Shown: positions 1,422 through 50,462, numbered from the stretch's first letter. The stretch is 64,000 bases of DNA from Sphyrna mokarran (GCA_024679065.1 JAGIQG010000004.1:54932001-54996000); one strand, 5' to 3'. The notes: generated by a model not told the origin, from the sequence alone. Numbers and translations: made by a program.

Positions 1422-1586
1422 CTAATCGTTTTCCGCCTCCGTATAGCCAGTCTTTTTTGCCCCATTTTGCTTCGTTCTCCGCAGTTGGGCATATTCAGTG
1501 CACGTTTCTTTAGCTTTGCCTTTGTCTGAGCCGGTCAACGCTACACGTGAGTATATCAGGTCATTACCGACTTTCCTTTGTTGCGT
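1422..1586 (-). CDS. Receptor A exon 7, terminal coding exon with ITIM 2 and ITSM-like motif (TQQRKVGNDLIYSRVALTGSDKGKAKETCTEYAQLRRTKQNGAKKTGYTEAEND*)
   Basis: Acceptor gaccttgcag. The phase-0 frame yields LIYSRV and TEYAQL, with TAG at 1424-1422. Not in the ORF track. Confidence 0.8.
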   Translation of the reverse strand, partial: TQQRKVGNDLIYSRVALTGSDKGKAKETCTEYAQLRRTKQNGAKKTGYTEAEND

Positions 1587-4500
1587 CTGCAAGGTCAATG
1601 TTTAAAAATATTGTTTACTGGTTGCATCACAAGTCCCATAGTCCGTTGTTCAAAAAAAATTCATCAGAAGGGCACGCAGATCATCTTATAACAGCATAGG
1701 GGCAAAGTCAACAGAGACATATTTCCTGCTTTATCGCATGGGTATTGATGTTACACTGGTGTATTTTATTTCTCTGATCGGTTACTCGGCCCCACCTGAG
1801 AATACTCACCTTGTCACTTTTATGCTTTGGAGTTTTGCTCAAATCTAATGCAGCATAATGCACAAATCCAGACGCATTCTCCTGTTTGTGCAAAACGGAA
1901 AACTTTTGTTACGTGGCTTGTTCATTGTGTTCATCAGTTTACACTAATTTTGGTCAAACATTGAGCGGATTAACTTGGAATCCAATAGACGTGCACAAAA
2001 TATGATTAATTTACATTTTCTTAGTGCGAATATTAAGACACTGTACACTTCTCACTCCTATACCAAATATTTAAACCCACCAATTTCACTTGACGTAATT
2101 GTTATGTAAATGTTGAAACGGGCGCCAGCTTCATTACGTACAGGTTATCTCCGATCTGAATGCATAACTGAATTGATGAAAACTTATTAAGTATATTTTC
2201 AACGAGATAAGCCGTTCTCTTTTTTAAACTGTTCTAAACAGTTCATCACTGTTTGACAATAAAACACTCGATGGCAAGTAAATTTCCACATCCGATTGAA
2301 ATGTGGAATCTCATTGAGACAAACCAAGATGCGGAGATGCTGGCGTTGGACTGGGATGGGTTCAGTAAGAAGTCTCACAGCACCAGGTTAACAATTGATC
2401 TGATGCAGGAGCAGTGTCCCGAAACTTCGTGATTCCAAAAACAAAACCTGTTGGAATTTAACCTGCTGTTGTGAGACCTGTTACTGAGACAAAATAATTA
2501 CATTTATTTAATGGGCTTAAAATGGTCTGACGTGATTATATTCACTTTCCATTACATCAATCTTCTCTAGTGTTTCAACAAACTGCCTGTAAAATGAATG
2601 AACTTACCAGTTCCTGACTCCTGTTTCCTTCTGTTACACGTCCGTCTTTACCTAGAAATAATTGAAATTTAATGATATTGAAAGAAAAACGTTCTGAAAA
2701 TGATTCTTACGGACCCGAAATGTTTAGTCTGTGTGCCTCTGCACAGGCGCTATCAGAAGTGTTGTCCAGGATTTTCGGTTTTTCAACTCTTTTTTAACAT
2801 CAGAGATTGCCTCACATCAGAGATGGCCAGAAAAAAAAAGCCCAAGGTAATTTTCAATTTCGCATTGTGCGGAAAATAATTGAAATCCTTACAAGGAACA
2901 GGGTGCTTTAAAATATTTCGCGGAAACTACGGTAATACTACACATTCTACCAGAAATCGGGCAAGTACCGAACATCAACAACAATAATATTGCGTGACTG
3001 AGCAGGCCCGAGGAGCCGTCTGGCCTACTAATGCTACTGTTTTTTATGTAGCACTGTGCAGAACGCTTCCCGGACCACAGCCACGGTTAAATCTAATTGT
3101 AACTCCACCACGGAGCGGTTTGAAAACTTATTTTGTGTCAGAGTGTATTTCATTCATCTGGTTGCAAAAGGAAATGTGTTTGGAAACATCTAGATAATGG
3201 TTTTCATTACTTCTTTCTATGTCCTAAAACATATTTTCAACAATTAGTGCTTCCTCAAAGCTATACAACTCTTTTCAACTTTATCTCCGAACTGTCTTTT
3301 CTATTGCGTTCCCCGGAAACTATCAGTAGTCCCAAAGGTATGTACGAAAATCAAGTGTTATCTTACCTTCATTCTTCAGCATTTGTTTCCGCTTCGCAAT
3401 GACGATCGCAAGCACGAGGAACGACAATGCAACCAGCGCAATCAAATAGTAATGTAATGTCGGGGTATTTTCTGCAAGATTAATTGTAACATGAGGTAAT
3501 ATTGGATACTAAATTAAAAAAGGCTCCAAGACAGTTTATTATGTAAACCATAGTGATGGTTGCACCAACCCCGCAGTGTTCAACGGAAATAGAACGTTTG
3601 ACTAAAAAGCTTGTTTGCAGCTAAGGATCTGCAGTATCTTCTGCCTCGAATATTTGACGCATTATTGATGAATCTACGAAGACTAAAAGGCTGGAGTCAC
3701 ATGTAGGCCAGACCGGGAAAGGGTGACTGATTTCCTTTCCTCAAAGTCATCCGAGAGCCAGATGGGTTTTTGCGATGAATTATAGTTTCATGATACATTA
3801 CTGAAACGAATGTTTAGTTCAGTATTTATTAATTGGTTTTAAATGTCATGATGTGACTTGAACCGATATCCTCACAGCTTTAGCCTGCACGTCTTGAGTA
3901 ATAATCTAGTGGCATTAAAATCTCGCCACTATCTTCCCTTCGAAGTATGCCATTGGAGATAACCGGACAACACCTAAATGATTCACCCTTAACTGCCGCC
4001 TGAAAGGGCCTATCAAGCTACTCCATTTAAGGGCAATTAGGGATAAAGAATAAATATTGGCCTAACGAGCGACGTTCACATTCCATGAAAGAGTTTACTT
4101 CAAAAATACACTGAACCGGATATACAGCGTTTTTACCGGTTGCAGTTTAGATGAGATTTATGAGACTGATTTCAGTTAAACCCATTTTGATCTGTAAGTA
4201 GGATGAGAAGCTGGTCATTTGGTTATTCCAAATCTCTGCACTGAATGGAACCAAACTTATAAAAATATTGAAATCTCACGGCAATCAGCCCTTGCGCAAA
4301 CAACGGGCCTTCAGATCAAAGCAATAGTTTTCAATCAAGAGGGGTTCGCAACGATCAAGTTTAAAGCATTTTCACCAAAATAAACAGAAAGCGAAAAAGA
4401 CTAATAATATTCAGTTAAGAAATATTAAACTAGAAAATTTGGACGAACACTTAGTATTGTTCCGTTAGAAATAGAGCAATTTGAAAGCAGATACGTATGG

Positions 4501-6875
4501 ATTTTTGTTCTTATATGGGATGTGAGCATTGCTGACGAAGCCAGCATTCCCATTCCCAATGCCTCTGAACAGAACGGCCTGCTAGAAAGTTGCAGGGGCA
4601 GTTAAGATTCAACCACGTTGCTCTGGCTCTGAAGTCACATGCAAACCTGGCTGAGTAAGGAGGGACGTCCTTGCCTGAAGGACGTTCGTGAGCCGGATTG
4701 GTTTTTTACCACAATCGATGATAGTTACATGGTCACCATCACTGAGACTAATCTAATACTCGGTAGCTACTAATTGAATTATGTTTCCAGAAGCTGCTCT
4801 TGTGGGATGCGAATCCATATCCTTAGATTGATTACTAGCCTGAGTGCATGCTGGCTATATAAATCGATTTCAACACATTTCATTAAATTCAGTGTAAAGG
4901 CACTTTAATATTTCTGTTGATATTTCCCGTGGCATTTCTGTGATTATTAATATGCATAAAACTTACGAAAAAAAAAACACTATGAATTCTACTGTAGGTT
5001 GCTTTTCTTTTAGAACAGTTTTTCCCCTACCTCGGTTTGGTTTAGGAATCGTGTACACCACAATAGCCGGAGTCTTGAGGGTGACATGAGATACCTGGCA
5101 TGTATAATTGACGCCTCTCGGTACAGGCTGATTCTCAACAAAAGTGCTGGAAACCTCATACAGTCCGTCTCTGTTCTGCACTTTACTGGTGTGTGTTCCT
5201 GATGCAGTTTCGACGCCATTTTTATACCAAGTGAGGGTGTAATTTTCCGGATAAAATGCAGCCGTTTCACAGACGAGGATCAGAGGCGCAGTCGAATTCC
5301 CTTCAGTTACCCTGGAGAAAAGATTCAGTGGGGTTGGGGCAGCTGCGGAACAGAAAATGAACAAAGTACCTGTGCACGGTTTGGAAAAATTAAATATACT
5401 TTTGACGTTCGGTTAATGTCCTCACTCACTGGCAATTCTTATTTCCTGCATTTGAATATTACACACAAGATCAATATACAACTAATCCGTATAAAGACCG
5501 GCATTCGATCAACGACAATCATTTTTGAATTCCCTGTGGGACACAGGGTGAGGTGATTTGTTAATCAACGTTCTGTTAAAGCGGCTAGAGAATTGAATGT
5601 TGATGAGATTGTCTTCTCGCAGAGTTTTTACATACTTTATATACAATGATATGACAGATTGACGAATAATATTCATATTCTTGATGATGAAATAAGCATT
5701 TCAATGCTTCTTTAAAGTCGCATTTGATTGAACAAACTACTTTCAGTTGAATCAGCCGAAGTTTCACCAGCAGAGCGTCTCTTGTTAAATTATAGGCAAA
5801 ATATTGCAGATGCTGCAATCTGAAATAGCCTCTCTGTGTTTATTTATTTATTAGAAAATTAGTGAACTGGCAGCGATGTATGTCTGAAACTCCAATCTGT
5901 TGAGTAAATCGATTTGGTCAAAAGTTAAATATTGAATATTTGAATACGTGCCGTATCGTTCTTTGACATTTACTTTAAGGAATACTGGTATTCATGGACA
6001 ATTAAAACTAAGCCAAAAGCTTTGCATATTTTTCTTGGGAATGGCCCACTAGTATAAAAGATTTTCAGTTAGTTTTACTTTAGGAATTCATTCTGAATGC
6101 CGCCAATATAAATTGACTTTATAGTTGTGATGTGTTTGATAAATATTACTAATATGTTCAGTACTCTCCGAGTGGCATTGCTGGTATAATTTTAACGCTG
6201 AGGACACGAATATACAACTAACATCGCGAAATATGTTAATAGACATGATTTCACTAAGAAAAAGAATGCACATTCCTGATTGTTGTGTTTGATGTATTAT
6301 GGTGATCTCGTTCGCCTGTATTTCAATCTTACCATGTACAATTAGATGCGATCCGGTTCCATTTCGTTGATCTATTCCCCGACGGATCACGGTACAATGG
6401 TAGATTCCAGAGTCTTGCAATTTCACATTTACTAAGCGAAAGAAACCGCTCACTTTATTTTCCACGCCAAAAGTTTTTCTCTTGTCTGGGCTTGAATGCA
6501 GGAATTCACTCTCACCATGTTTCCACCAGAATACCCGTACCCAGGATTGGGATTGAAAAATGGGGAATATACAGTAGAAGGTGATGTTTCCCCCTCTGGA
6601 TACAATCGCTTCGACTGGTGCTTGAGACACACTGAACGAAGTATGGTCCGCAACTGTCAGAAAGATAGACAGACACAGGTTAATTGCAGTAGATACAACA
6701 TAAATGTCGAAAAGTGAAAGCATAATCTAGAGAGAGGAAATAAGGTTCTTTAAATTGATATGAAAACTACTTCCTCGGAAGTTATTAATCAAAGTAACAT
6801 GGCAAGTGAAAAACTAGTACCTGCATGAATAATTCCTCGGAGGACCAAGCATAAAAGTGCTATGATCGTTGTCAT
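1422..6875 (-). CDS. Receptor A: SIRP/NITR-like VJ-C1 Ig-superfamily type I membrane receptor, inhibitory form (357 aa, 7 exons)
   Basis: Manual splice assembly: join(6875-6821, 6653-6333, 5342-5031, 3471-3367, 2651-2608, 1881-1810, 1586-1422). All introns are GT-AG, phases 1,1,1,1,0,0, 1074 nt open to TAG. Signal peptide, V domain, C1 domain, hydrophobic TM and tyrosine motifs VHYAAL, LIYSRV, TEYAQL. Every splice site is conserved in the paralogous copy. No transcript evidence available. Confidence 0.88.
1810..1881 (-). CDS. Receptor A exon 6, cytoplasmic, ITIM 1 (ENASGFVHYAALDLSKTPKHKSDK)
   Basis: Acceptor caaacag, consensus donor AAG|GTGAGT, 72 nt, phase 0-0. Confidence 0.82.
2327..2486. 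mobile_element. Short fold-back element derived from Penelope-like terminal repeats (intron 5 of receptor A)
   Basis: 29-nt imperfect inverted repeats at 2363-2391 and 2458-2486. The right arm resembles the terminus of the Penelope remnant at 37870-37958. Degenerate hammerhead core CTGATGC...GAAA. Confidence 0.6.
2608..2651 (-). CDS. Receptor A exon 5, cytoplasmic spacer (GKDGRVTEGNRSQEL)
   Basis: Acceptor tttctag, donor G|GTAAGT, 44 nt, phase 1->0. Same length in copy B. Confidence 0.78.
3367..3471 (-). CDS. Receptor A exon 4, transmembrane (ENTPTLHYYLIALVALSFLVLAIVIAKRKQMLKNE), uncharged
   Basis: Acceptor cttgcag, donor G|GTAAGA, 105 nt, hydrophobic stretch followed by KRK stop-transfer. 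Confidence 0.88.
3690..3937 (-). mobile_element. Deu-domain (SacSINE1-like) SINE fragment
   Basis: Reverse complement of the element at 12450-12802 (ctggagtcacatgtaggccagacc...ccagatgggtttt). Confidence 0.7.
4512..4855 (-). mobile_element. Deu-domain (SacSINE1-like) SINE
   Basis: gggcagttaagattcaaccac...ctgaagtcacatg...gtgagccggattggtttttt, same family as 12450-12802. Confidence 0.7.
5031..5342 (-). CDS. Receptor A exon 3, C1-set Ig domain
   Basis: Acceptor ttccgcag, donor G|GTAGG, 312 nt. Motifs LVCETAAFYP, LTWYKNG, NRDGLYEVSS, YTCQVSH. Lies within ORF 4963..5364. Confidence 0.95.
6333..6653 (-). CDS. Receptor A exon 2, V-set Ig domain with J-like G strand
   Basis: Acceptor tttctgacag, donor G|GTAAG, 321 nt. 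Motifs ITFYC, VFWW, QDSGIYHC, NGTGSHLIV. Lies within ORF 6088..6723. Confidence 0.95.
6821..6875 (-). CDS. Receptor A exon 1, signal peptide MTTIIALLCLVLRGIIHA
   Basis: ATG at 6875, hydrophobic core, 55 nt ending in phase-1 donor G|GTACTA. Confidence 0.85.
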
Positions 6876-6879
6876 GATT

Positions 6880-7030
6880 TGCAAGGCTTCCAACTGTTGC
6901 CTCTGTGCTAACTGCGAACTTACAACTTTTTAAAATAGCTTGCTGTTCGTGTTCCTTCAGATTCGTCACAGCCAGGATGTTGATACATCACTTTCAACAT
7001 CCGGAAAGTGAGGTTTCAAAAACTACGCTT
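6880..7030 (-). promoter_or_regulatory. Putative proximal promoter of receptor A
   Basis: TATA-like TATTTTAAAAA about 55 nt upstream of the ATG. Overlapping ETS-like ACATCCGGAAAGTG at ~6997-7010 and GAAAGTGA IRF-like half sites. Largely conserved in copy B. Motif-level evidence only. Confidence 0.4.
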
Positions 7031-9527
7031 CCATTTTTAAGTGAGATTTTCTAATTTTTGCAACTACTTAGTTTCCTGGAATTACATATTTTACTGGCAG
7101 CACAAAGTAAGGGGAATATACATTTTCTAACACTGAATTTATGAACACTCTCCGAGTTGGTTTCTTTCCTGACAGGTAATGAACGAAAATAAATTGAGAA
7201 TACGCACCATTGTCATATTCAGACCTACTGTAAATAGGGACAGTTGTCTGGCTGTTTTTATATTGTACAACAGGTGGAGAGACATGATCTGAGAGCTGAC
7301 AACATGTGCACTATCTTCAGTGAGACCAGAAGGTTGGGAATATGTTGCTATTTTTAAGGAGAGCACAGTCGAATATGAGCTTTTTGAAGAGGATTGACGA
7401 CAATGGTATCCATGGGCATAAAGTCATCAAATAAGTCGACTGTTAGCATGTTAGCGGTGACCGGGACTGAAAAAGTGGGCGACAAGTTGTTCATTCGCAC
7501 GTAAACTTTGGCAGAGAAAATGGTTCTTAGATAATACGTGTTTAAAGTGTGTTTGGGGAAAAACACGAGAGGTTTCTGCGTTACAGAGTTTCTCGGTTAT
7601 GGTAGGATGCGGAGTAGCAATTTGGTTCGCTAGATAAATGGAAAAGAAGGGAGCTGTAGAAATCATTGGCTGGAAGATAATTTGATGACAAAGGATTCCT
7701 TGAACGTTTTGTAATATTCGCTAAGCGAGGAAGCTTGAGAGATTTAAGCAGAATGTTTTGGTTTGGGGGTAGGGAGGGTGAATGTGTAGAGTGGTGGGTT
7801 GTTTGAGATGAGCGTGGCAGTCGCGGTGCAGGCGAACAAAAAATTACTTATTGTTGCTCTCCAGAACAATTATCCAATAATGAGCAGTTGTGGCTGTGAA
7901 CGGTGAGACTTTGGGAAGCTTCTCTTGATTTAACCAGATGAAGCTTTGGATGGTTAGACCCGTTGTTTGTAAGAGCTAGTCAATCCTTTTGGAATTGAGG
8001 ATGCGAAGGTTAATGTTACACCAATATTACAGTAAGCATCCGAGAACGTGAGGCATTTAGTTTGACTACCTGCGCTTACTCTTTATATCCTTTCTTTTGT
8101 CAACAGAATTCCAAATTATTTCATTCGCGGAGTGCACTGTTTCCAATCTGTATCCCAGAAAGACATTTTGCTACAAAGCTGTATAATCTGTTCGCCATCA
8201 CAGGAATTGCCTTGTATGTTATTGTCACATGCTTCCTCTCAAAGTAATTTTTTGGATACAATTATTCAACCAGAGAGCATGCTTCATACTCAATGGTGTC
8301 TCATGCCCAGCTTAGTCGATTACGAGTTGGATGCTCACTCCGGAGGCTTCAACAGTTAATCTGAACTGCAAAATATTGCTTTGCTCGCCGAATGCTACAA
8401 TATTAGAGGTGTCGCATTTCAGATGAGGTGTTCTGTAACCGCAGCTGCTTCGTAAAACGACCTTTCCTTCTCCAGACCTTGCTTCCTGTTTTCTTTCACC
8501 TTTCTATGTAACGTTTGCACTTCGATGTGAATTGGGCCACATCGAAGATTAACTACTGCTATGGAGAGAACATCAAGATGAATGATGAAAAACGAGATAA
8601 AAATTGCACAGCCACCTGAGAGAGCCAACCGTCTTGATGTGAAGATGAGTTCGGAAATGGGAGAGATTGTGCCAGTTTCATGGAATTCAGTTATTCAGTT
8701 GGGTAGGAGACGCTGAGAACATTCTTTTTAGAACAGAAACAAGGAAGAATAAATGTGATAAAAATTTTTAAAACTATGAGTAGCTTTACAGAACTAAATG
8801 GAGAAATTGTTTCTCGGATTTGTAAGGTAAACACGCACATCTGTGATGATTATAAAGCAGTCAGAGGTGAGAAATATTTATGGGCTCTGCACTATAATCC
8901 CTTTTATTCCTTCAGGGATGTTGATGTCGTAGGAAAGATCACCATTTGTTACTCATCCCGAATTGCCCTATCAGAGCACAATCAAGAATCAACTATTTTG
9001 TTGTAGATCTGAAATCACAAAGGAGCCCTGTTAAGTATTGAATTCCATCACATTAAAACAAGTTGCAGGAGATAATGCTGGGGAAGAGAGAAAATATATA
9101 TGTTTATGTAAAACCGAGTTTCCGCGGAACTTTGAAGCTGCTGTCCTGCATTTGTATGGTACGGGAGCATTTTGATTTGTGCTGATGTGGATCGAGTATT
9201 ATATCTTAACAAAATGGATGTTTTGAGCAACAAATCACTAACCAGTACGAAAAAGCAAAATATATCCCCAAGCCGTGGCTTGACCAAATAAAAAGTCTTG
9301 ACCAATTGAAATGCACAATTATTACATTGAACAATATGAAGAGAAATACGGGGATGTCTAACAATAACAGGCCACAGAAAATTCGGAGCTAAACGCGAAC
9401 ATTCAAAAGTGAATAAAAGTGGACTTTTATAAGAAAACAATTACCAAATATATTGATAGAATACCAACACTTAATAGCAAATGTTCAAGTCAAATCGATA
9501 TGCATTAGCAGGACAAGCGAAATGGTG

Positions 9528-10940
9528 TCCTGTCACTAGTGGAGTGCCACAAGGCTCAGTACTAGGTCCTCTTCTATTTGTGGTCTACATAAACGACTTG
9601 GAAGTAGGGGTAGGTGGTGAGATCAGCAAATTTGCTGATGACACCAAGATGCTTGGATTGGCGGGTACAGAAGAGCAGTGTCAGGCAATACAACAGGACA
9701 TAGACAGGTTGGTAGACTGGGCAGATAGATGGCAAATGGAATTTAATCCGGAAAAATGCGAGGTGATGCATTTTGGCCGGAAAAATGTAGAAGAGAATTA
9801 TAGGATAAAAGGTAAAACTATACGGAGCATAGAGACGCAGAGAGACTTGGGGGTGCAGGTTCACAAGTCTCTGAAGGTGTCCTCACAGGTGGAGAAGGTG
9901 ATAAAGAAGGCGTATAGTATGTTAGCTTTCATAGAAAAGGGTATAGAATACAAGAGTAGGAGTTTGATGTTGCAGTTGTATACAACTTTGGTTAGGCCTC
10001 ACTTGGAATACTGCGCCCAGTTCTGGTCTCCGTACTATCGGAAGGATGTGGAGTCCTTGGAGAGAGTGCAGAGGAGGTTTACCAGGATGCTGCCTGGTAT
10101 GGAAGGACTGTCCTATGAGGAACGATTAGATAGACTGGGGTTGTTTTCCCTTGAAAGACGTCGGCTTAGAGGGGATCTCATAGAGGTGTATAAGATTATA
10201 AGGGGTATAGATAGAGTAAATGGAGGTAAACTTTTTCCACCTTTAGAAATGGATAGGACGAGGGGTCATGGCCATAGGGTGAGGGGGGCTATGTATAGGA
10301 CGAATATTAGAGGGCAGTTTTTCACACAAAGGGTAGTGGGGGTGTGGAATGCACTGCCGAGTAAGGTGGTGGGAGCAGGCACGCTGGGGCTGTTTAAGGG
10401 TCTCTTGGACAGCCACATGAGCGGTATGCAGATAGAGGGATATATTAGGACTGTTTAACTACGGCTTTTTTCCACAGGTAATTCGGTCCATAATTTTGAG
10501 CATGCATTCGGCAGGTGGTGCGGGTACAGCTCTTGGATGTTGATTCATGGGTTGCCTGGTACCTCATGTCGTAAATGAGTGCTTTATGTGGACCATCTGA
10601 AGGGCACCATGACAGCTCAGAGACTATCGATGTGGCTGTGCAGACACTTGGAATTGGGCCGGTGTCTGCGGGAGTTTGCGCGTTCTCCCCGTGGTTGCGT
10701 GGGTTTTCTCCGGGCACTCCGGTTTCCTCCCACAACCCAAAAATTCGCTCTTAGGCTGATTGGGTAACAAATTGTCCCTATGGTGAAAATTTTCCATATT
10801 AGGAATAATATATATATTATTATATAGGAATATTAAAATAGGATAATGTATTTGCTACTATTTGGTATGACGGCGGCGCGGGCTCGTTGGGCCGAAGGGC
10901 CTGTTTCCCGTGCTGTGTTGCTTAATAAAAAAAAAATAAT
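9528..10940 (+). mobile_element. Young 5'-truncated CR1-clade LINE with an uninterrupted RT C-terminal ORF, a V-SINE-derived 3' UTR and a 7-bp TSD
   Basis: ORF to TAA at 10458 with [36 protein letters not shown] aatggtg at 9521-9527 and 10941-10947. A-rich tail. Empty site in copy B at ~53413. Confidence 0.95.
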
Positions 10941-11310
10941 AATGGTGCTAACATTATCTTGATGTTCTTTATAACTTTCCAGTCAATTGTCCTTTCTGGA
11001 CTTTAAAAGCTTAATTAAAGCATATGGTTCAATACCTAAGTCTGGTGCAAAAACATATTAATTTTGTTTATCGCGCGACATTTGCAGAAGCAACTAATTC
11101 AGCGCGTTCCGATTTTCGGAAGTTGACAGAATTTTGCAACAGGCAGTTTTTTTTTGCATTCTCGGTATTCCCGATTTCTATATTTTTTTCTGCAAATTAC
11201 TGTTAGTTTCATAATCATTGGTATAATTAGACTATCCTTTTATATTTGGATTAATGTGTTTTGAAGAGCTTTTTGCTCAAATTGATGAAGCCATTTATCA
11301 AAAGCAATTC

Positions 11311-11516
11311 CAGAATTATTGGAAACCAGACAGTTTAGTTCAGGAGACAGCCTTAATTGTGGGACAATTAACAAAAGCAAAACCAGAATTATTGGAAACA
11401 AGAGAAATTCGTTCAGAAGACAGTCTTAATTGTGCAACAATTAGCAAAAGAAAAACCAGAGTTATTAGAAACGAGACAGGTTAGTTCAGTAGACAGACTT
11501 AATTGTGAGACAATTA
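11311..11516 (+). repeat. 73-bp tandem repeat, about 2.8 diverged units
   Basis: Units start cagaattattggaaac at 11311 and 11384, with a diverged third start (cagagttattagaaac) at 11457. Confidence 0.9.
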
Positions 11517-12449
11517 AGGAATAATTAATTCATTAATAGAAATGCTAGGAATACCGCAAGTGTAATTTGGAAAAGAAAAATGTTATAATTATGAACAAAT
11601 CATTAACAGCTGCTAATTAATACAGTTTCTTAAAGTGCTGTGGGGAGAAAAATCTAGTGTACTTCTCAGGCCGCCGAGTAAAAAGAGATAATATGACTTC
11701 TTAATCTTATCTCGAAAGAATGAATAGGCACTTGATTAATGAGATGTTGAAAATGTGGGTAGTGAGGGAGAGACAGAGCTTTTGATGAATAAGCGTTGAA
11801 AGTTATTTTCTAAGTTTTTCGGAGTCGTCACTTCAGAACGTCGCCTTTGAAGGTGACACGAAATTTCTTCGATTGTTAAAGATAAGCTCTCTCCTCTTAT
11901 TACTATCAACGAATAGCATATTGCTATTAATTAGTACTTTGCCTTTTATCTTTCTGACGTTTTACCTTTTTCATAGTTAATAAACATGTTGTACTCGCCA
12001 TTTAGAGTGACCTTACTTCTGATATAGTTAAGTCGGTGGATTCTGATGCAATTTTTAAATGGGTGGTAATTGCAAACAAGTGATCCCCACAAATCTTAGA
12101 TCAGATAAATAACAAAAAATGTAATACTGCCTCTGCATGAAGAAGATTCCGAAGGGTACAGGAGACATCGCTTCACTCCGGACTGATTAAGAATTGCGTT
12201 GCCTTTTCCTAAAAGGCTTTGAAATAAGTTTAGTTTGAAGTCTCAACACATATATACTTCGTGTGATATCATTTATTTTATATTGTAGTCGAGAACAGCT
12301 TGCACAATATCTCTAAGCATTAGACCGTTGATTAGGCTACTTGGTGATTGCTGTTCCCACAACCATCCTGTTGTTTATTAAAAATGCTGTTAAAATCAAA
12401 GCATGTTGTGTTGATCGCTTTGGCAATAGACTAGCAAAATTGATAGTGT

Positions 12450-12802
12450 AGGCAATGGCCTAGTGGCATTATTCCTGGATTATTTATTCAGAAACTCAGT
12501 TGATGTTCTGGGGATCGGGGTTCGAATCTCGTCACGGCAGCTGGTGGACTTTGAATTCAATAAAACTTATCTGCAATTCAGAATCCTCTCATAGCTATTG
12601 CCGATTATTGGAAGACCCATCTGTTTCACTAATGCCCTGTGAGGAAGGAAATCTGCCGACCCTATCCGGACTGATCTAGATGTGACTCCAGAACCACAGC
12701 CATGTGGTTGACTCGCAACTGCTCTCTGAACGAGGGCATCTCGGCCTCGGCAATAAATGCTAGCCAGCCAGCAACTGGCTGTCGTAGGAATTAATAAAAA
12801 AA
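12450..12802 (+). mobile_element. tRNA-headed Deu-domain SINE (SacSINE1-like), near full length
   Basis: A box tggcctagtgg, B box ggttcgaatc, core cccatctgtttcactaatgccc...ggaaggaaatctgcc...atgtgactccag, A-rich tail. Confidence 0.8.
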
Positions 12803-14705: not shown

Positions 14706-14740
14706 GCCGCCAGGATGCACTTCTGGATTCTAAACTATCT

Positions 14741-15252: not shown

Positions 15253-15489
15253 ACCTTATCAGTAAATTGACTGACATTTCCAAGGGCGTTAATGGTTGTC
15301 TATTGGCGCTTAAAATTCCTGCATGACAGCAAACAAGTAACTTCCATCGATGTTTCCACTCTCGCATAACCAACTCTGATGAAGCTACCAGGATATTATA
15401 CTTCTTGCTTATTGCTATTCCAAAATAAGTTTATCATTCTTTCTTGGTACGCTTCAGGGGTTGAGCAGATCGACGGGCAGGGAACGTTT

Positions 15490-42911: not shown

Positions 42912-43804
42912 ATATAGTTGGAGGATAAGATTCAGCTTAATAAAGACCATTCCTCACCAAGTGCCCAGAATTTGTTTAAAGTTGACTTTTATGGCTGATT
43001 TTGGCAATGTGCTGAAGCTGTAATTTCTGAGTCACTGAGATCAGTGTTACAGTATTTTAGTATATAGAAAAATGCAATACGTATGGGAAATTTAAACTTA
43101 ACTTTCCTACATCTTGTGTAATCATTAGTAAGAAAAGGACAGACAATGTGTGCAGGAATAAGCCTTCGATCATGTAAAGGAATTAATTAAATAATTAAAT
43201 GCCAATACACGAAACAGTTACATTTTACCGTGGTAACGATAGTGCTGTTTAGAAAGGTGCAGTAACATGATTAAAACGGGACATCCGTTGCACGTGTGTG
43301 TCGCTATAATTATACATTGAAACACACGATGTAAAATAACTGCTGCTTTTGAATACTTGATACATCCAGTGTGTTGCAATGTTGCTACATTTAGAAATGA
43401 TACGTTCGCATTTCGAGAAGACCGAGAGAAATACGTCCCCTGCCAAGTTCCAATCGTTAGTACGCCTTGTCAATATTTAGCAACGTATAGGTGTAGCTCA
43501 AAGCAGAAAGTTACAAACCCCCAGCAAATAGTTTACACGCTATCAGCTTATCCAGATAAACGGCCACACATTGTCTGTCCTTTTCTTACTAATGATTGCA
43601 CAAGATTTAGGAAAGTTAACTTTAAATTTCCCATACGTATTGCACTTTTCTATATGCTAAAATACTGCAATACTGATCCAGTGACTCAGAAATTACAGCT
43701 TCAGCACATTGTCCAAAATCAGCCATAAAAGCCAACTTCAAAGAAATTCTGGGCACTTGGTGAGGAATGCCCCTTATTAAGCTGATTTTATCCTCCTACT
43801 ATAT
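42912..43804. repeat. ~240-bp inverted repeat (arms 42912-43152 and 43565-43804, spacer ~410 bp)
   Basis: aagaaaaggacagacaatgtgtg versus cacacattgtctgtccttttctt, and cattcctcaccaagtgcccagaattt versus aaattctgggcacttggtgaggaatg. Confidence 0.95.
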
Positions 43805-44962
43805 TTTTTACATACCGTAATAGCCACTATTTGGGTTAATTTAGCGTCAAAATTATTTATACTACTTTGTTTCCATATTGAGTCAACAATTGTTTGTCAG
43901 GTAAGAAAATTAAATGTTAGGTAAACCAAAGCATTATGACAGTTGAACAGTTGCCCATTTACTTGCATTTTTCAGGATCCATCTCTTTCCAGATAAATGT
44001 TTCGTCGTCAGCCTAACCAAACGGATCAAACCCCAACAGGTCAAAAAAAAAAATGAACATGGCTTCTTCTGTGGAAGTATTTGAAGAAATAAATAAGACA
44101 ACAGAGAAAGAAGTTGCAGAAAATGCCGACTGCCTGGAGTAGAAAATGACAGTCTATCGATATAGGAGAATGGCGCTTGGATAAAGAATACATACATTTT
44201 GTTGCAAAATGGAATTCGATGCATATCCATAAAGGAAACTCTGATTGCTATGGGGAAAGAATCGGGATGGGAATAATTGGGCAACGCTGTCAAATTTCCA
44301 GCACGGGTCAAACGGTCACTTTCTCAGATACAGGATTCCACAATTCGACATGGTGTCATGTAGAAATAGATGTTTGTAAAGCAAGATACAACTCGAACCT
44401 ACTTTCAGTAAATCGATAGGGAAATTCAAGTATTCAGCTTCACCCGTTTTCTATCAGGTGCATCAGCTGAACTGGATACAACGCACTGGCACGTATTCAA
44501 CGTAATAAGGGGACGTATGAATCTACACCTTTTTTTCTGTTTTACTGAACAAAGTTAATACTGATCGTTAATTTGTAAGGAGTCCTAGAAAAACGATTTT
44601 TAAAAAAATTTACTTTACTATACAGATAATTAGGTACCACGGGACACAATGTATCGTTGTAGCCGAAAGAACATATTTGTCATTGTTTTTAAAATGTACT
44701 CATTGAACAATACCGTATGACAAGACAGTTTTTTTTAAGCAACGAAAATAAACTTCTGGAAGTAACTGAGTAGCAAGTGACTACCACGTACTGCATTATC
44801 TGATAGACATGATATCATAGAGCACAAACACTCCTGGTGTCGGTACTGCAGAGAGACGCGATCAGCGTACTCCAGAGAAGTGAATTCTGCGTCGAAATTC
44901 AATTGCTAATTGTTTTTCTTCTCCGTATGGCCAGACTCTTTTGCTCCATTTTGTTTCATTCT

Positions 44963-45070
44963 TCACAGTTGGGCATAATCAGTGCATCTTTCGTTAGCTT
45001 TGCTGTTGTCTGAACTGGTCAACGCTACACGTGAGTATATCAAGTCATTACCGATTTTCCTTTGTTGAGT
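44963..45070 (-). other. Receptor B exon 7 homolog, relic ITIM/ITSM frame (TQQRKIGNDLIYSRVALTSSDNSKANERCTDYAQL*), 3' UTR in the full splice form
   Basis: Acceptor gaccttgcag intact, paralog of 1586-1479, TGA where copy A has CGG. Confidence 0.75.
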
Positions 45071-45302
45071 CTGCAAGGTCAATGTTTGAAAATATTGTTT
45101 ACTGGTTACATCGCAAGTCCATGGTCCGCTGTTCAAATAAATTCATCAGAAGGGCACACAGATCATCTTATAGACAGCATAGGGGTAAAGTCAACAGAGA
45201 CATATTTCCTGCTTTATCGCATGGGTGTTAATGTTACAATGGTGTACTTTCTTTCTCTGATCGGTTACTCGGCCCCACCTAAGCATACTCACCTCGTCAC
45301 TT

Positions 45303-45356
45303 TTATGCTTTGGAGTTTTGCTCAAATCTACTGCGGCATATTTCAGACTCATTTTC
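45303..45356 (-). CDS. Receptor B exon 6 coding part, frameshifted (ENESEICRSRFEQNSKA*)
   Basis: Acceptor ccaagcag. The exon is 64 nt (45356-45293) versus 72 nt in copy A. TAA at 45305-45303, donor GAG|GTGAGT retained. Confidence 0.75.
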   Translation of the reverse strand, partial: ENESEICRSRFEQNSKA

Positions 45357-48300
45357 CTGCTTGGGCAAAAAGGAAAATTTTTGTTAAGCGGCTGGTTCAA
45401 TGTGTTCACTTGTTTAAAATAATTTCGATCAAACATTGAGTGGATTAACCTGGGATCGAATAAACCTGCGCAAAATATAATTAACTTACAATTACCTCAG
45501 CGCGAATATTAGGGCACTCGACACTTTACACTCTTATCCCAAATGTTTAAACCCGCCAATTTTAATCGACATAATTGTTACACGAATATCGAAACAGGCG
45601 GTAACTTCATTACGTAGAACTTATTTTCGATCTGAATGAATAAATGGATCGATGAAAGCTTAGTAACTGTATTTTCAACGAGATAAGCTGTTCTCTTTTC
45701 TAAACGTGTATCGCTGTTTGCCAATAAAGCAACTGTATTTCCACATCCGATTAAAATGTGGAATTTCATTGAGGGAAAAACAAGATGCGGAGATGCCGGC
45801 GTTAGACTGGGGTGGGTGCAATAAGAAGTCTCGCAGTACCAAGTTAAAAATTCAACTGATGCAGGAGCTGCGCACTGAAACTTCGAGATTCCAAAAAAAA
45901 AACCCTTTGGACTTTAACCTGGTGTTGTGAGACCTTTTACTGAAACAAAACAAATACATTTATTAAGTGGACTTAAACTGATCTGATTATATTAAATTTC
46001 CACTATATCAATCTTTCTTGGTGTTTCAACAAACTGCCTGTAAATGAATGAACCTACCAGTTCCTCGCTCCGTTTCCCTCCTGTTACACTTCCGTTTTTA
46101 TCTGAAAACAAGTGAAATTTAAAGATATTCAAATATAAAAGTACTGTAGAAGAATCTTACGGACCCGAAATATTAACTCTGTGTGCTTCTATACAGGCGC
46201 TACCAGAAGTGTTGACTTTATCCAGGATTTTCTATTTTTCAACTCATTTTTCACATCAGAGATTGGAAAGATAAGTCTATGGTTAAAGAAAAACCCAAGA
46301 GGATTTCTAATTTTGTAATGTGCGGAAAATAATTGAAATCCTTAGAACCAGCAGGGTACTTTAAAATATTTCGTGGGAGCAATGGTAATATTTCGCATCG
46401 TATGAGAAGGCGGGCAAGTGCCCAACATCAGCGACGGTAATATTGCGTGACGGAGCAGACCCGAGGAGCCATCTGGCCTTCTACTGCTCCTGTTTGTTTT
46501 GTAGCTCTCTGCACAGCCGTTCTCGGACCAGAGCCACAGTTAAAGCTAATTGTGACTCCACCACGCAGCGGTTTGGAAACTAATTTTGTGTGGGACTGCA
46601 TTTTGTTCATGTGGTTCCAAAACGAAGTATATTTGGAAACATCTAGATAACTGTTTTTATCTTTATTTTATCTCCATGTCTTAAAACATATTTTCAACAA
46701 TTAATGTTTCCTCAACATCATACGACTCTTTACAACTTTAATTCCGAACTGATCACCAGTTTACAGTAATTTTGGTCAAACATTGAGTGGATTAAACTAG
46801 GATCGAATAGACGTGCACAAAATATAATTAATTTACATTTACCTAAGTACGAATAGTAAGACACTCTAAACTATCAGTCGTGCCAAGGATATGTACAAAA
46901 ATCAAGTGTTATCTTACCTTTATTCTTTAGCATTTGTTGCTGCCGCGTAATGACAATCGCAAACACGAGGAATAATCCAACTAGTGCGCACACTCGAATC
47001 GAATAGTAAAGTAATATCGAGATATTTTCTGCAAGATTAATTGTGACATGAGGTAATAGTGGATATTAAATAAAAAAGGGCTCCAAGATATTTATTATTT
47101 AAACTATAGTGATGGTTGCACTAATCCTGCATTGTTCAACGGAAATAGAACGTTTGAATAAAAAAACTTGTTTGCAGCTAAGTATCTACAATATCTTCTT
47201 ATTCGAACACTTGGCCATTATTGGTTAATCTACGAAGACTAAAAGGCTGGCGTGATGTTTAGGCCAGACCGGGAAAGGGTGACTGATTTCCTTTCCTAAA
47301 AGTTATCAGAGAGCCAGGTCGGTTTTTGCGTCAGAATTATAGTTTCATCCCACATTACTAAAACGAATGTTTAGTTCAACATTTATGAATTGGTTTGAAA
47401 TGTCATGATGTGATTTGAAGCAATATCCTCATAGCTTTAGCCTGCACGTCTTGAGTAATAGGCTAGTGGCATTAAAATCTTGCCACCATCTTTCCTTAGT
47501 AGTATGCCATTGGAGATAATCGGACAAAAACCAAATGGTTCACCCTTAGTTGCTGCCTGAAAAGGCCTATTAAGCGACTCCGTTTAAGGGCAATTAGGCA
47601 TAAATAATAAATAATGACCTAGCCAGTGACCTTCACATTCCATGGAAGAGTTTACTTTTAAAAAATCGGTGAACCGGAAATACAGCATTTTTGCCGGTTA
47701 GAGTTTAAATAAGATTTATGAAACTGCTTTCAGTTAAACCCATCATGATCTGTAAGTAGGATGAGAAGATGGTCACTTGATTATTCCAAAGCTCTGCACT
47801 GAACATAACTGAACGTGTAACAATATCGAAATCCCATGGCAATCAGCCCTTGAGCAAACAATGGGCCTGCCGATCATAACAATAGTTTTCAAGCAAGAGG
47901 AGTTCGCAACGATCAAGTTTAAAGCATTTTCAACAAAATAAACAGAAAGTGAAAAAGACTAATAATATTCAGGTTAAGAAATATTACATTAGAAAATATG
48001 AATGGTTGCTTGATATTGTTCCGTTAGAAATCGAGGAATTTGAAAGGAAACATGTTTGGATTTTTGTTCTTATTTATGAGATGTGAGCTTTGCTGACGAA
48101 GCCAGCATTGCCCATTCCCAATTGTTCCTGAACAAAATGGCCTGCTAGAAAGTTGCAGGGGCAGTTAAGTTTCAACCACGTTACTCTGGCTCTGAAGTCA
48201 CAGGTAAACCTGGCTGACTAAGGAGGACAGATTTCCTTCGCTGAAGGACATTCGTGAATCGGATTGGTTTTTAAAACAAACGATCATAGTTACATGGTCA

Positions 48301-50462
48301 CCATTAATAAGATTTACCTGATATCCCATAGCTATTAATTGAATTATGTTTCCAGAAGCTGCTCTTGTGGGATGCGAATCCATGTCCTTAGATTGATTAC
48401 TAGCCTGAGTGCATGGCTGGCTATATAAATCGATTTCAAACATTTCATTAAATTCAGTGTAAAGACACTTTAATGTTTCTGTTGATATTTCCCGTGACAT
48501 TTCCGTGATTATTAATATGCGTAAAACTTACGAAAAAAATCACTATGAATTCTACTGTAGGTGGCTTTCCTTTTAGAAACAGTTTTTCCCCTACCTCGGT
48601 TTGGTTTAGGAATCGTGTACACCACAATAGCCGGAGTCTTGAGGGTGACATGAGATACCTGGCATGTATAATTGACGCCTCTCGGTACAGGCTGATTCTC
48701 AACAAAAGTGCTGGAAACCTCATACAGTCCGTCTCTGTTCTGCACTTTACTGGTGTGTATTCCTGATGCAGTTTCGACGCCATTTTTATACCAAGTGAGG
48801 ATGTAATTTTCCGGATAAAATGCAGCCGTTTCACAGACGAGGATCAGAGGCGCAGTCGAATTCCCTTCAGTTGTCCTGGAGAAAAGATTCAGTGGGCTTG
48901 GAGCCGCTGCGGAACAGAAAATGAGCAAAGTACTGTGCACGGTTTGGAAAAATTAAATATACTTTTGACGTTCGGTTAATATTCTTACTCATTCGCAATT
49001 CCTATTTCCTGCATTTGAATATTACACACAAGATCAATATACAACTAATCCATATAAAGACCGGCATTCGATCACCTACAATCATTTTTGAATTCCCTGT
49101 GGGACACAGGGTGAGGTGATTTGCTAACCAACGTTCTGTTAAAGCAGCTGGAGAATTAAATCTTGATGAGACAGTGGTCTCGCTGAGTTTTTACGTGTTT
49201 TATATACAATGACATGACAGATTGACGAATAATATTCATATTCTTGATGATGAAATAAACGTTTTAATGCTTCTTTAAAGCCGCAGCTTGATATTTGATT
49301 AGACAAACTACTTCCATTTAAATCGGCCGAAGTTTCACTAGCAGAGCCTCTCTGTTAAATTATAGGCAAAATGTTGCAGATGCTGGAATCTGAAACAGCA
49401 TCTCTGCGTTGTTTATTTATTTATTTGAAAATTAGTGAACTGGGAGCCATGTATGTCTGAAACTCCAAACGGTTGAGTAAATAGATTTGGTCCACAGTTA
49501 AACATTAAATATTTGAATACGTGCCGTATCGTTCTTTGAAACTTACTTTAAGGAATACTGGTATTCATGGACAATTAAAACTAAGCCAAAAGCTTTGCAT
49601 ATTTTTCTTGGGAATGGCCCATTAGTATAAAAGATTTTCAGTTAGTTTTACTTTAGGAATTCATTCTGAATGCAGCCAATATAAATCTGGTGCATAAATT
49701 GATTTTATAGTTGTGATGTGTTTGATAAATATTACTAATATATTCAGTACTCTCCGAATGGCATTGCTGGTATATATTTAATGCAGAGGATACGAATATA
49801 CAGCTAACTTATCGCCAAATATGTTCATAGACATGATTTCACTAAGAAAAAGAATGCACATTCCCATTGTTGTGTTTGATGTATTATGGCGACCTCGTTC
49901 GCCTGTATTTCAGTCTTACCATGTACAATTAGATGCGATCCGGTTCCATTTCGTTGATCTATTCCCCGACGGATCACGGTACAGTGGTAGATTCCAGAGT
50001 CTTGCAATTTCACATTTACTAAGCGAAAGAAACCGCTCACTCTATTTTCCACACCAAAAGTTTTTCTCTTGTCTGGGCTTGAATGCAGGAATTCACTCTC
50101 ACCATGTTTCCACCAGAATACCCGTACCCAGGATTGGGATTGAAAAATGGGGAATATACAGTAGAAGGTGATGTTTCCCCCTCTGGATACAATCGCTTCG
50201 ACTGGTGCTTGAGACACACTGAACGAAGTATGGTCCGCAACTGTCAGAAAGATAGACAGACACAGGTTAATTGCATTAAATACAACATAAATGTAGAAAA
50301 GTGGAAGTGTAATCTAGAGAGAGGAAATAAGGTTCTTTAAATTGATATGAAAACTACTTCCTCGGAAGTTATTAATCAAAGCAACATGGCAAGTGAAAAA
50401 CTAGTACCTGTAAGAATAATTCCTCGGAGGACCAAGCACAAAAGTGCTATGATCGTTGTCAT
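45303..50462 (-). CDS. Receptor B: paralogous VJ-C1 receptor, putative activating form (298 aa, TM arginine, tyrosine-free short tail)
   Basis: join(50462-50408, 50240-49920, 48906-48595, 47028-46918, 46101-46058, 45356-45303), all GT-AG, 897 nt to TAA. An 8-nt deletion in exon 6 relative to copy A shifts the frame. Could alternatively be a decaying gene. Confidence 0.82.
45783..45942. mobile_element. Paralog of the Penelope-derived fold-back element
   Basis: Homologous to 2327-2486. Confidence 0.6.
46058..46101 (-). CDS. Receptor B exon 5, cytoplasmic spacer (DKNGSVTGGKRSEEL)
   Basis: Acceptor ttttcag, donor G|GTAGGT, 44 nt. Confidence 0.76.
46918..47028 (-). CDS. Receptor B exon 4, transmembrane with Arg (ENISILLYYSIRVCALVGLFLVFAIVITRQQQMLKNK)
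   Basis: Acceptor cttgcag, donor G|GTAAGA, 111 nt. In-frame +9 and -3 nt indels versus copy A. Confidence 0.88.
47245..47495 (-). mobile_element. Deu-domain SINE fragment (copy B)
   Basis: Paralog of 3690-3937. Confidence 0.7.
48072..48420 (-). mobile_element. Deu-domain SINE (copy B)
   Basis: Paralog of 4512-4855. Confidence 0.7.
48595..48906 (-). CDS. Receptor B exon 3, C1-set Ig domain
   Basis: 312 nt, LVCETAAFYP...YTCQVSH, four amino-acid differences from copy A. Lies within ORF 48512..48940. Confidence 0.95.
49920..50240 (-). CDS. Receptor B exon 2, V-set Ig domain with J-like G strand
   Basis: 321 nt, same splice sites as copy A, one amino-acid difference (VENR vs VENK). Overlaps ORF 49825..50217. 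Confidence 0.95.
50408..50462 (-). CDS. Receptor B exon 1, signal peptide MTTIIALLCLVLRGIILT
   Basis: ATG at 50462, 55 nt, phase-1 donor, paralog of 6821-6875. Confidence 0.85.

Follow-up and report, generated by a model that had tools for sequence, protein, structure and literature searches.

The question raised by this locus is whether two neighbouring genes that carry almost the same ectodomain are an inhibitory immune receptor and its opposite-signalling partner. Sequence-only reading of the window (the whole 64,000-nucleotide stretch of Sphyrna mokarran DNA that was analysed) had suggested just this. The answer turns on three things: how the two genes came to share an ectodomain, what their membrane and tail exons encode, and what their relatives in other cartilaginous fish look like.

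A tandem gene pair of VJ-C1 plan

Comparison of the window with itself finds a tandem duplication (Table 1). Each duplicated block carries one receptor gene on the minus strand, gene A (1422-6875) and gene B (44963-50462), the linked copies lying 43 kb apart; the limits 1422 and 50462 are the stop codon of A and the ATG of B. In tblastn searches of the window with 164 family proteins, these are the only two receptor copies, and no further Ig exon is found.

Each gene consists of a leader, a VJ exon, a C1 exon, a transmembrane (TM) exon and tail exons, and all exon borders carry AG/GT splice sites. In B, six of six acceptors and six of six donors are canonical, and the leader, V, C1, TM and cyt1 exons are without a lesion. 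A phase-1 end of the TM exon does not fit tail exon T1, which needs phase 0; in both genes, as homologues confirm, the 44-nt cyt1 exon bridges the two. This exon was missing from the earlier description of the pair.

The V-set domain of A closes with a J-like segment, NGTGSHLIVH, directly followed by a splice donor, and the VJ exon of A has neither an internal split nor a recombination signal. The consensus for a joined VJ is given in the accessible text of PMC11599192 as FGxGTx(L/V)xV. By this measure the exon is of the joined kind: G-x-G and L-x-V are kept, with N at the F position.

Table 1. Positions of the duplicated blocks and of the exons of genes A and B in the window
Feature	Position	Strand	Remarks
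Duplicated block, copy 1, with gene A	5..21982	.	self-BLAST, 83-91% identity to 43240-63997
Duplicated block, copy 2, with gene B	43240..63997	.	self-BLAST and 500-nt identity profile
A leader	6821..6875	-	ATG at 6875, phase-1 donor
A VJ exon	6333..6653	-	Pfam V-set E=3.9e-8; 73% identical to Mustelus P0001
A C1-set exon	5031..5342	-	Pfam C1-set E=5e-13; 87.5% identical to Mustelus P0001
A TM exon	3367..3471	-	uncharged; 3 codons short
A cyt1	2608..2651	-	44 nt, phase 1 in, phase 0 out; matches cyt1 segment of homologues P0001, P0003, P0004
A tail exon T1	1810..1881	-	72 nt, phase 0/0; ITIM-like VHYAAL
A last coding exon T2	1422..1586	-	ITIM-like LIYSRV, ITSM-like TEYAQL, one more tyrosine
B leader	50408..50462	-	ATG at 50462
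B VJ exon	49920..50240	-	3 nt and 1 aa different from A; Pfam V-set similar to A
B C1-set exon	48595..48906	-	7 nt and 4 aa different from A; Pfam C1-set similar to A
B TM exon	46918..47028	-	arginine (CGA) in TM
B cyt1	46058..46101	-	44 nt, phases as in A; frameshift in T1 left uncompensated
B T1	45293..45356	-	64 nt after 8-nt deletion; splice sites intact
B T2	44963..45070	-	open through LIYSRV and TDYAQL, then TGA at A's CGG

Shared ectodomains, divergent signalling halves

The near-identity of the two ectodomains, a central claim of the sequence-only reading, is borne out. Over 106 codons the V domains differ by three nucleotides and a single residue (K/R). The C1 domains differ by six nucleotides and four residues over 103 full codons, and by seven nucleotides over the whole 312-nt exon. 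The V and C1 exons are thus 99.1% and 97.8% identical, against 92.9% for the intron between them and 90.9% for the duplicated flank (11925 aligned non-coding bases). Synonymous differences in the ectodomain number 3 at 147 sites, compared with about 9% in the flank (Poisson P=0.0008). On this comparison, the ectodomain exons of A and B have been homogenised.

Exon-centred gene conversion would keep V and C1 of B near-identical to those of A, and because it does so, B would present the ligand-binding surface of A. The open V and C1 frames of B are, of course, no proof of selection on B, since conversion from A would maintain them in any case.

The other half of each gene behaves differently. 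Across TM and tail the two copies have diverged about twice as far as in the flank, introns 4 and 5 standing at 79.8% and 83.0% identity (Fisher p=5e-18 and 3e-10), which argues that the signalling modules of the two genes are held separate. For A, the uncharged TM and ITIM/ITIM/ITSM-like tail proposed earlier are confirmed at the level of motifs: the hydrophobic stretch contains no R, K, D or E, and the tail has three tyrosine motifs, two of them ITIM-like (VHYAAL, LIYSRV) and one ITSM-like (TEYAQL).

The TM of B reads ...YYSIRVCALVG..., its arginine standing two residues ahead of the family's conserved TM cysteine. This is one column N-terminal of the usual arginine column (8 of the 9 R-type rows aligned), at a position otherwise held by Pro or Ala. 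Two indels separate the TM exons. One is a 3-nt in-frame deletion in B relative to A and Mustelus. The other, of 9 nt, is a derived deletion in A when judged by Mustelus and the rest of the family: B, Mustelus and 19 further aligned family rows all retain the three codons missing from A, that of the conserved cysteine among them. The view that an inhibitory-to-activating conversion can still be read in the DNA survives only in part: not every step ran from A to B, as the 9-nt deletion belongs to A and the arginine of B stands off the family's usual column.

In the tail of B, T1 has lost 8 nt. Read in phase 0, it gives 17 residues with no tyrosine, then a TAA at 45305-45303, 10 nt ahead of the T1 donor. 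T1 is, however, a cassette with phase 0 on both sides, and T2 of B is 3' UTR when T1 is included and coding when it is skipped. Skipping restores an ITIM (LIYSRV) and an ITSM (TDYAQL) in frame. Here the earlier description of B stands for the TM arginine; the tyrosine-free tail holds only with T1 included. Downstream of the stop of A (TAG at 1424-1422) lie AATAAA signals at 1239 and 1154; both hexamers are mutated in B, and neither AATAAA nor ATTAAA occurs within 1400 nt of the B stop.

A VJ-C1 family in cartilaginous fish

A and B belong to a large multigene family of non-rearranging VJ-C1 receptors, known to date from cartilaginous fish alone. Its members share one exon plan and one domain order with the pair, whose cyt1, T1 and T2 exons match homologues. 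The nearest protein is P0001 of Mustelus asterias (V 73%, C1 87.5%, T2 81% identity). In the V tree, A and B (99*) join P0001 (SH-aLRT 88, unstarred) within a 13-row clade (96*) made up of sharks and rays; in the C1 tree, A, B and P0001 form one clade (99*). A phylogeny of V and C1 had been proposed as a check on the pair, and on both trees A and B cluster with cartilaginous-fish VJ-C1 members.

The family is already present in public annotation under SIRP-like names. NCBI's automatic names for members include [quoted passage not shown] and "signal-regulatory protein beta-1-like", but also "tapasin-related protein-like", "CD276 homolog" and "NCR3 ligand 1-like"; databases also label members SIRP-alpha-like. 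No description of a VJ-C1 family of cartilaginous fish was found in the literature searched, and none of the proteins retrieved was identical to A or B, this species' copies being seemingly absent from the collections searched.

Many members of the family carry ITIM tails, and many others a TM arginine with a short tail. The latter architecture is seen in Hypanus (P0023 and P0034, NCBI models in which the tail ends after cyt1 without a tyrosine motif), Scyliorhinus (P0002, P0009), Mobula (P0048), Hemitrygon (P0052), Heterodontus (P0073) and Leucoraja (P0050). The ectodomain of the Leucoraja protein is 95% identical to that of an ITIM-tailed Amblyraja protein. On both trees the arginine-type members are interspersed with ITIM-type ones: the V tree requires at least 8 changes to account for its 9 R rows (33 rows scored), and the C1 tree at least 10 for its 11 R rows (45 rows scored).

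Several known systems invite comparison. SIRP-alpha and SIRP-beta-1, like A and B, join a VJ-like V domain to a C1-set domain and set an ITIM-bearing inhibitory member beside a short-tailed partner whose TM is basic and whose ectodomain is nearly the same. Over V and C1 in one stretch, the family profile matches SIRP-alpha (2wng, E=6.4e-33); taken by itself, the C1 exon hits SIRP-gamma (5.6e-14) and SIRP-alpha (2.1e-13). However, the SIRP ectodomain has one V and two C1 domains, and A and B have one C1 each. Among solved structures, the V exon finds its best matches in V domains of PD-L1 (E ~2e-5), with no SIRP V among the best 60. For both the C1 exon and the whole profile SIRP ranks below UrIg2 and the IgA heavy chain, and Ig heavy chains in general score at least as well as SIRP. 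On these two features, a single C1 and a sequence no closer to SIRPs than to other V-C1 proteins, A and B depart from the SIRP family.

UrIg and UrIg2 of elasmobranchs resemble the pair in having a non-rearranging VJ exon and a split leader followed by C1-type domains, as the accessible part of PMC12227049 describes them. Among solved structures it is in fact UrIg2 (9dmx) that the C1 exon matches best (E=3.7e-17). The number of C domains differs, however: nine in nurse shark UrIg2 and several in UrIg (PMC12227049). The words ITIM and SIRP are absent from its main text as accessible (PMC12227049), whereas A and B combine a single C1 with ITIM/ITSM tails. With one C1 exon against several C domains, A and B depart from this group as well. 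A further non-rearranging IgSF family whose members have joined VJ domains is PRARP, described from chicken and other non-mammals (Fu et al. 2019, J Immunol 202:1992); the likeness is drawn from the title of that paper and from mentions in PMC10751288 and PMC11599192.

For the route from inhibitory to activating form, KIR2DL/KIR2DS and other such pairs offer a parallel. There, a point change gives a basic TM residue, a frameshift or stop removes the ITIM tail, and the ectodomain is left nearly unchanged. Activating KIR-type receptors reportedly arose from inhibitory ones, a view said to go back to Abi-Rached and Parham in 2005. KIR pairs, however, use C2-type domains of the leukocyte receptor complex; their likeness to A and B is one of design, not of descent. 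Genes of leukocyte receptor complex type were not found in sharks, according to the accessible text of PMC4016189.

What the second gene may do

The best explanation, in which we place about as much belief as doubt, is that A is an inhibitory receptor and B its non-inhibitory tandem partner with the same ligand surface. Both would be expressed and reach the cell surface. The tail tyrosines of A, judged from their motifs, would be phosphorylated after ligand binding and recruit an SH2 phosphatase. In B, the 8-nt deletion would end the tail ahead of any tyrosine. Nonsense-mediated decay usually follows a 50-55-nt rule, and because the stop of B lies so close to its last exon junction, its mRNA should escape. 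With a membrane arginine and a truncated tail free of tyrosine, B would therefore be a non-inhibitory partner. It would most likely couple through the arginine to an ITAM adaptor with an acidic TM, and so signal in opposition to A; its minimum role would be that of a signalling-null competitor for the ligand of A. Against the adaptor step counts a report that shark genomes available in 2014 held no FcR-gamma chain (PMC4016189, as far as its accessible text goes). The off-column arginine, the ITIM/ITSM in T2 of B and the lost AATAAA signals sit uneasily with this explanation as a whole.

The same observations can, of course, be read as damage. B might be a decaying copy, intact upstream only through conversion from A, its arginine an unselected substitution. 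The frameshift in T1, the stop in T2, the lost hexamers and the displaced arginine would all follow, and the TM-exon dN/dS of 0.67 is not clearly below 1. We consider this unlikely, though it is the strongest of the rivals. Against it, the first five exons of B carry no lesion and all its splice sites are intact. Both TM indels are multiples of three, against only 3 of the 36 non-coding indels of the gene, which speaks for a TM exon whose frame has been maintained. All lesions sit in the portion that a receptor would drop on becoming an activating or decoy form, and in several other species gene models annotated as expressed show this same truncation.

Slightly less probable again is a dual receptor, in which the 64-nt T1 is skipped to join the TM arginine to a shortened ITIM/ITSM tail. 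Human KIR2DL4, with a TM arginine and an ITIM tail, is the comparison for such a protein, and Mustelus P0036 likewise combines a TM arginine with an ITIM-bearing tail. The NCBI model of Mustelus asterias P0001 joins cyt1 straight to T2, and in B the two motifs of T2 remain exactly in frame, with the stop right behind them. Between A and B, T1, intron 6 and T2 keep 86-93% identity within surroundings at 80-83%. However, the acceptor and donor of T1 in B are of the same quality as those in A, making inclusion the default expectation. The T2 stop, moreover, removes the last 19 residues kept by A and Mustelus, and the substitution pattern of T2 (dN/dS ~0.47; 7 non-synonymous, 4 synonymous) does not depart significantly from neutral.

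That A and B are alleles or haplotypes of one locus, set in tandem by an assembly error, is very improbable despite their near-identical coding ectodomains: outside the coding exons they diverge by 9% in the flank and by as much as 20% in the 3' half, a LINE reverse-transcriptase insertion at ~9.5-10.9 kb is private to copy 1, a stretch of ~1.1 kb at 13.9-14.9 kb finds no equivalent in copy 2, and the copies lie 21 kb of unique DNA apart in a window with no N. The two genes are genuine paralogues, and the mis-assembly that the earlier reading had named as its possible undoing can be set aside.

A broader proposal, which we regard as tentative and rather doubtful, is that the VJ-C1 family is the main paired inhibitory/activating system of cartilaginous fish, with A and B an instance of turnover in progress. 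If so, conversion would be holding the ectodomain the same while the signalling halves stay separate; B would just have lost its ITIMs by a frameshift predicted to evade nonsense-mediated decay, and A would have deleted the TM position that bears the arginine. On this view the pair could be the product of a dual ancestor, bearing both TM arginine and ITIMs, that split into two specialised genes. The family would then stand where bony vertebrates have their LRC, FcR-like and SIRP receptors, and cartilaginous fish would have built a paired-receptor system on the antigen-receptor-like VJ-C1 unit itself.

Two gene copies with nearly identical ectodomains

The window, which is free of N, holds a tandem duplication in which positions 5-21982 (copy 1) match 43240-63997 (copy 2) in collinear pieces that are 83-91% identical. 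Between the copies lies a spacer of about 21 kb of unique, transposon-rich sequence. Each copy carries one minus-strand gene, called here A (copy 1) and B (copy 2); tblastn searches with four homologues, and then with 164 proteins, placed Ig exons at these two places only. The limits of the candidate region, 1422 and 50462, are exactly the stop codon of A and the start codon of B. In both genes, every acceptor ends in AG and every donor starts with GT.

Exons of genes A and B, with borders set by copy-to-copy alignment, splice sites and homologues (TM, transmembrane; cyt1, T1 and T2, cytoplasmic and tail exons 3' of it, T2 being the last coding exon)
Exon	Gene A	Gene B	Strand
Leader	6875-6821	50462-50408	minus
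V	6653-6333	50240-49920	minus
C1	5342-5031	48906-48595	minus
TM	3471-3367	47028-46918	minus
cyt1	2651-2608	46101-46058	minus
T1	1881-1810	45356-45293	minus
T2	1586-1422	45070-44963	minus

Upstream of the leader exon, 7018-7210 and 50605-50797 match the N-terminal 76 residues of the model for P0001, a homologue from Mustelus asterias; the match suggests that this model has an alternative or mispredicted first exon. The spacer contains a direct tandem repeat of 167 nt (26254-26420 and 26430-26596, 97% identical). An inverted repeat of about 240 nt (42912-43152 and 43565-43804, 92.6% identical) flanks the start of copy 2 at 43240, and may be a transposon pair or be related to the duplication junction. 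Some stretches are private to one copy. Within about 1.4 kb found only in copy 1, an open frame on the plus strand (9481-10458) has an RVT_1 domain (E=1.6e-12); this stretch is a LINE insertion that postdates the duplication. Copy 1 also has about 1.1 kb of its own at 13.9-14.9 kb, and copy 2 about 0.7 kb at 57.8-58.5 kb.

The V exons match Pfam V-set (E=3.9e-8 in A, 9.2e-9 in B) and the C1 exons match C1-set (5e-13 and 3.3e-12, respectively). The V exon terminates in NGTGSHLIVH immediately before its donor; of the J consensus quoted in PMC11599192, the G-x-G and L-x-V positions are present. By its sequence, then, the V exon is a joined VJ domain.

The sequence-only reading had called the two ectodomains nearly identical, and so they are. 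The V exons differ by one residue and 3 nt over 106 codons, the C1 exons by four residues and 6 nt over 103 full codons (7 nt over the whole 312 nt). Identity between A and B is 99.1% in the V exon, 97.8% in the C1 exon, 95.8% in intron 1 and 92.9% in intron 2. Because the introns are less similar than the exons they adjoin, the excess of similarity is centred on the exons. In the upstream duplicated flank (7300-21982), 11925 bases align at 90.9% identity. At the rate of this flank, about 13 synonymous differences would be expected over the 147 synonymous sites of the ectodomain exons, where three are seen (Poisson P=0.0008). Short-tract gene conversion, with selection to keep the ectodomains equal, is the reading preferred for this deficit; as an alternative, purifying selection by itself is weaker.

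A and B are 73% identical to Mustelus P0001 in the V domain and 87.5% in C1, while their own V domains are 99% identical to each other. Such a pattern would be expected of a fast-evolving ligand-binding domain under concerted evolution.

The 3' halves of the genes behave differently from the flank. Identity falls to 87.4% in the rest of intron 3, 79.8% in intron 4, 83.0% in intron 5 and 86.2% downstream, an excess of divergence with Fisher p between 1e-4 and 5e-18; it returns to 86-93% in a patch around T1, intron 6 and T2. The TM exons of A and B share only 82% identity. Taken as one segment, the TM exon to the downstream flank (1247-4700 against 44723-48170) is 80-87% identical between the copies, significantly below 90.9%. 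Either the signalling halves split earlier, or everything else has been homogenised since.

The signalling halves

Three small lesions separate the signalling modules of A and B: an 8-nt deletion, a change from Pro/Ala to Arg, and a 9-nt deletion in A. The uncharged TM and inhibitory-type tail that had been assigned to A are both present. Its hydrophobic stretch has no charged residue, and its tail carries, at motif level, VHYAAL in T1 and LIYSRV and TEYAQL in T2, which also holds a fourth tyrosine. The arginine reported for the TM exon of B is there as well.

The further statement that the tail of B has no tyrosines holds only if T1 is included. That exon, 8 nt shorter and read in phase 0, gives 17 residues without tyrosine before a TAA at 45305-45303, 10 nt ahead of the donor; T2 of B, however, is still open through LIYSRV and TDYAQL, with a stop directly after. 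Between the TM exon and T1 lies cyt1, a 44-nt exon present in both genes and omitted from the sequence-only reading. It is required to bridge the phase-1 end of the TM exon and the phase-0 start of T1. Being 44 nt long in B as well as in A, cyt1 leaves the frameshift of B uncorrected.

It had also been proposed that the steps of an inhibitory-to-activating conversion are legible in the DNA. The TM arginine and the 8-nt tail deletion can indeed be read in B, but the TM exon has changed on the A side too. When 22 TM regions are aligned, A alone lacks three columns that read R/P-V-C in B and Mustelus, and has therefore lost a TM cysteine that most members keep. The arginine of B is a proline in Mustelus. 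In eight of the nine aligned family members that have a TM arginine, the arginine immediately precedes a conserved Cys/Ser/Tyr column; that of B lies one residue N-terminal of this usual position.

What might these two genes be? That A and B form a receptor pair of the inhibitory/activating type is the preferred reading, and it is given an even chance of being right. Here, A would inhibit via its phosphotyrosine motifs. B would present the same face to the ligand but could not inhibit, and most likely would couple through its TM arginine to an ITAM adaptor with an acidic TM. A message whose stop lies within 50-55 nt of the last exon junction usually escapes nonsense-mediated decay; the T1 stop of B lies within that distance, and thus its message should escape. 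Against the adaptor step counts a 2014 survey (PMC4016189), which reports no FcR-gamma chain in shark genomes. On a shark ITAM adaptor, nothing relevant was found in the literature searched.

A less likely alternative is that B is a decaying copy whose ectodomain has been rescued by conversion. Gene A has AATAAA 182 and 267 nt past its stop; in B both are mutated, and neither AATAAA nor ATTAAA occurs within 1400 nt of the stop. Of these sites (1154-1239 in A, 44620-44705 in B), one has changed to AGTAAA in B, a weak variant signal. The TM exon has a dN/dS of 0.67, cyt1 of 0.43 and T2 of 0.47, with few changes in each, and in the tail exons too few to separate constraint from neutrality. Indels between A and B are multiples of three in 3 of 36 cases in the non-coding parts of the gene, while the only two in the TM exon are of 9 and 3 nt; this speaks for maintenance of the reading frame in the TM exon.

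Somewhat less likely again is a dual receptor, in which skipping of T1 joins the TM arginine to the ITIM/ITSM motifs. T1 is in phase 0 on both sides, so that a transcript without the damaged exon would encode a receptor that has the TM arginine together with one ITIM and one ITSM. The NCBI model of P0001, the nearest known protein, splices cyt1 straight to T2, and its Mustelus paralogue P0036 has a TM arginine and an ITIM-bearing tail in one protein. That the arrangement of A and B, with its spacer and its private stretches in either copy, is an assembly artefact is very improbable.

A family in cartilaginous fishes

The preferred reading, of an inhibitory/activating pair, concerns two members of a larger family. 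With the V domain as query (within its unspliced open frame), four proteins were found among eight candidates, all from sharks. A catshark member recovered 22 proteins among 1917 candidates; 19 are named to shark, ray or chimaera species, and we infer from their accession-number series that the other three are from Callorhinchus. A four-member profile, run against 1.84 billion representatives, gave 1036 matches at E<=0.001, of which 276 had E<=1e-10 and 86 had E<=1e-30. All 30 representatives that were looked up stand for clusters from cartilaginous fishes. They belong to Hypanus, Hemitrygon, two species of Mobula, Amblyraja, Leucoraja, Heterodontus, Heptranchias, Mustelus, Scyliorhinus, two species of Chiloscyllium, Hemiscyllium, Carcharodon and Callorhinchus. 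Within a species, several members lie on one chromosome. NCBI names them automatically as SIRP-alpha-like, SIRP-beta-1-like, tapasin-related-like, CD276 homolog, NCR3 ligand 1-like or lambda light chain-like.

Three combinations of membrane segment and tail are found repeatedly. The first has an uncharged TM and a long tail with several ITIM/ITSM motifs; the second, a TM arginine and a short tail, which in models from Hypanus ends after cyt1, as is predicted for B; the third, a different TM with an arginine and an end reading ...VDH. Proteins of the third type (P0010, P0017, P0039, P0041, P0057, P0060, P0063 and P0081) extend from chimaera to sharks, with the arginine near the TM start in seven of the eight models (the exception is P0039) and a conserved ...(I/V/M/F)(D/E)H end. 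An arginine form from Leucoraja (P0050) is 95% identical to an ITIM-tailed Amblyraja protein (P0026) over 213 ectodomain residues.

Trees were made from proteins of 190-520 aa with ids no higher than P0100, leaving out rows with less than 80% coverage of the exon query. A and B are sisters on both the V and the C1 tree (99*). With P0001 they form a starred clade on the C1 tree (99*); on the V tree their join to P0001 has an SH-aLRT of 88 and is unstarred, all three lying within a starred clade of 13 rows. Arginine forms are scattered on both, requiring at least eight changes for nine arginine rows among 33 scored (V) and at least ten for 11 among 45 (C1), counts that lean high, given how few columns the trees rest on and how many of their forks are open. 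TM classes were assigned heuristically and then corrected by eye. The V tree has 70 rows, 37 of them unscored, and the C1 tree 83, with 38 unscored.

Where does this family belong? Among solved structures, UrIg2 is the best match of the C1 exon (E=3.7e-17), and next come IgA heavy chain, SIRP-gamma and SIRP-alpha. The V exon matches PD-L1 V domains best, weakly (E ~2e-5), then TCR, VNAR and amphioxus VJ-C2 near 1e-3, with no SIRP among its best 60 solved matches. A 25-member profile matches, in order, IgA heavy chain, UrIg2, another chain, a Fab heavy chain and then SIRP-alpha, whose V and C1 are covered in one stretch (E=6.4e-33). An AlphaFold model of a Heterodontus homologue (P0003, 25-row alignment) has a mean pLDDT of 76.4, with most 10-residue V/C1 blocks above 90, a TM helix at 225-263 and a disordered tail. 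Foldseek, which gave at least 500 matches for it, places antibody light chains and a TCR chain at the top (best E=1.8e-16); this check, made on a relative of the window's own proteins, only confirms the V-C1 unit. On these comparisons, the unit is antigen-receptor-like VJ-C1.

Kinship with B7 or PD-L1 was considered and rejected; the V matches are weak, and the best 60 matches of the family profile include neither PD-L1 nor another chain of the B7 family. Identity with UrIg or UrIg2 is ruled out because the architecture differs: those proteins have several C domains, whereas A and B have one C1. The words ITIM and SIRP are absent from the main text of the UrIg2 paper (PMC12227049). In design, SIRP is the mammalian protein most like A and B, which have one C1 domain to its two; it is not demonstrably the closest relative.

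What a shark receptor pair would mean

Receptor pairs have arisen repeatedly as a counter to pathogens that turn inhibitory receptors to their own use. Their design is, of course, well known, and the names SIRP-alpha-like and SIRP-beta-1-like in the public models of relatives already hint at pairing; the value of the A/B pair is thus that of a testable lead rather than a surprise. No description of the VJ-C1 family, and no inhibitory/activating paired-receptor system for sharks, rays or chimaeras, was found in the largely open-access main texts searched. The survey PMC4016189 reports shark genomes as having no LRC-type, FcR-like or FcR-gamma genes.

The pair offers a compact test case: its signalling modules are three small lesions apart, and its ligand-binding exons hardly differ. 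Next to UrIg/UrIg2 and SIRP, the family would be a third kind of gene with a non-rearranging VJ-C1 unit, and this would bear on the debate over the origins of antigen receptors. With a large family built on such a unit, the paired-receptor design would reach to the oldest jawed vertebrates.
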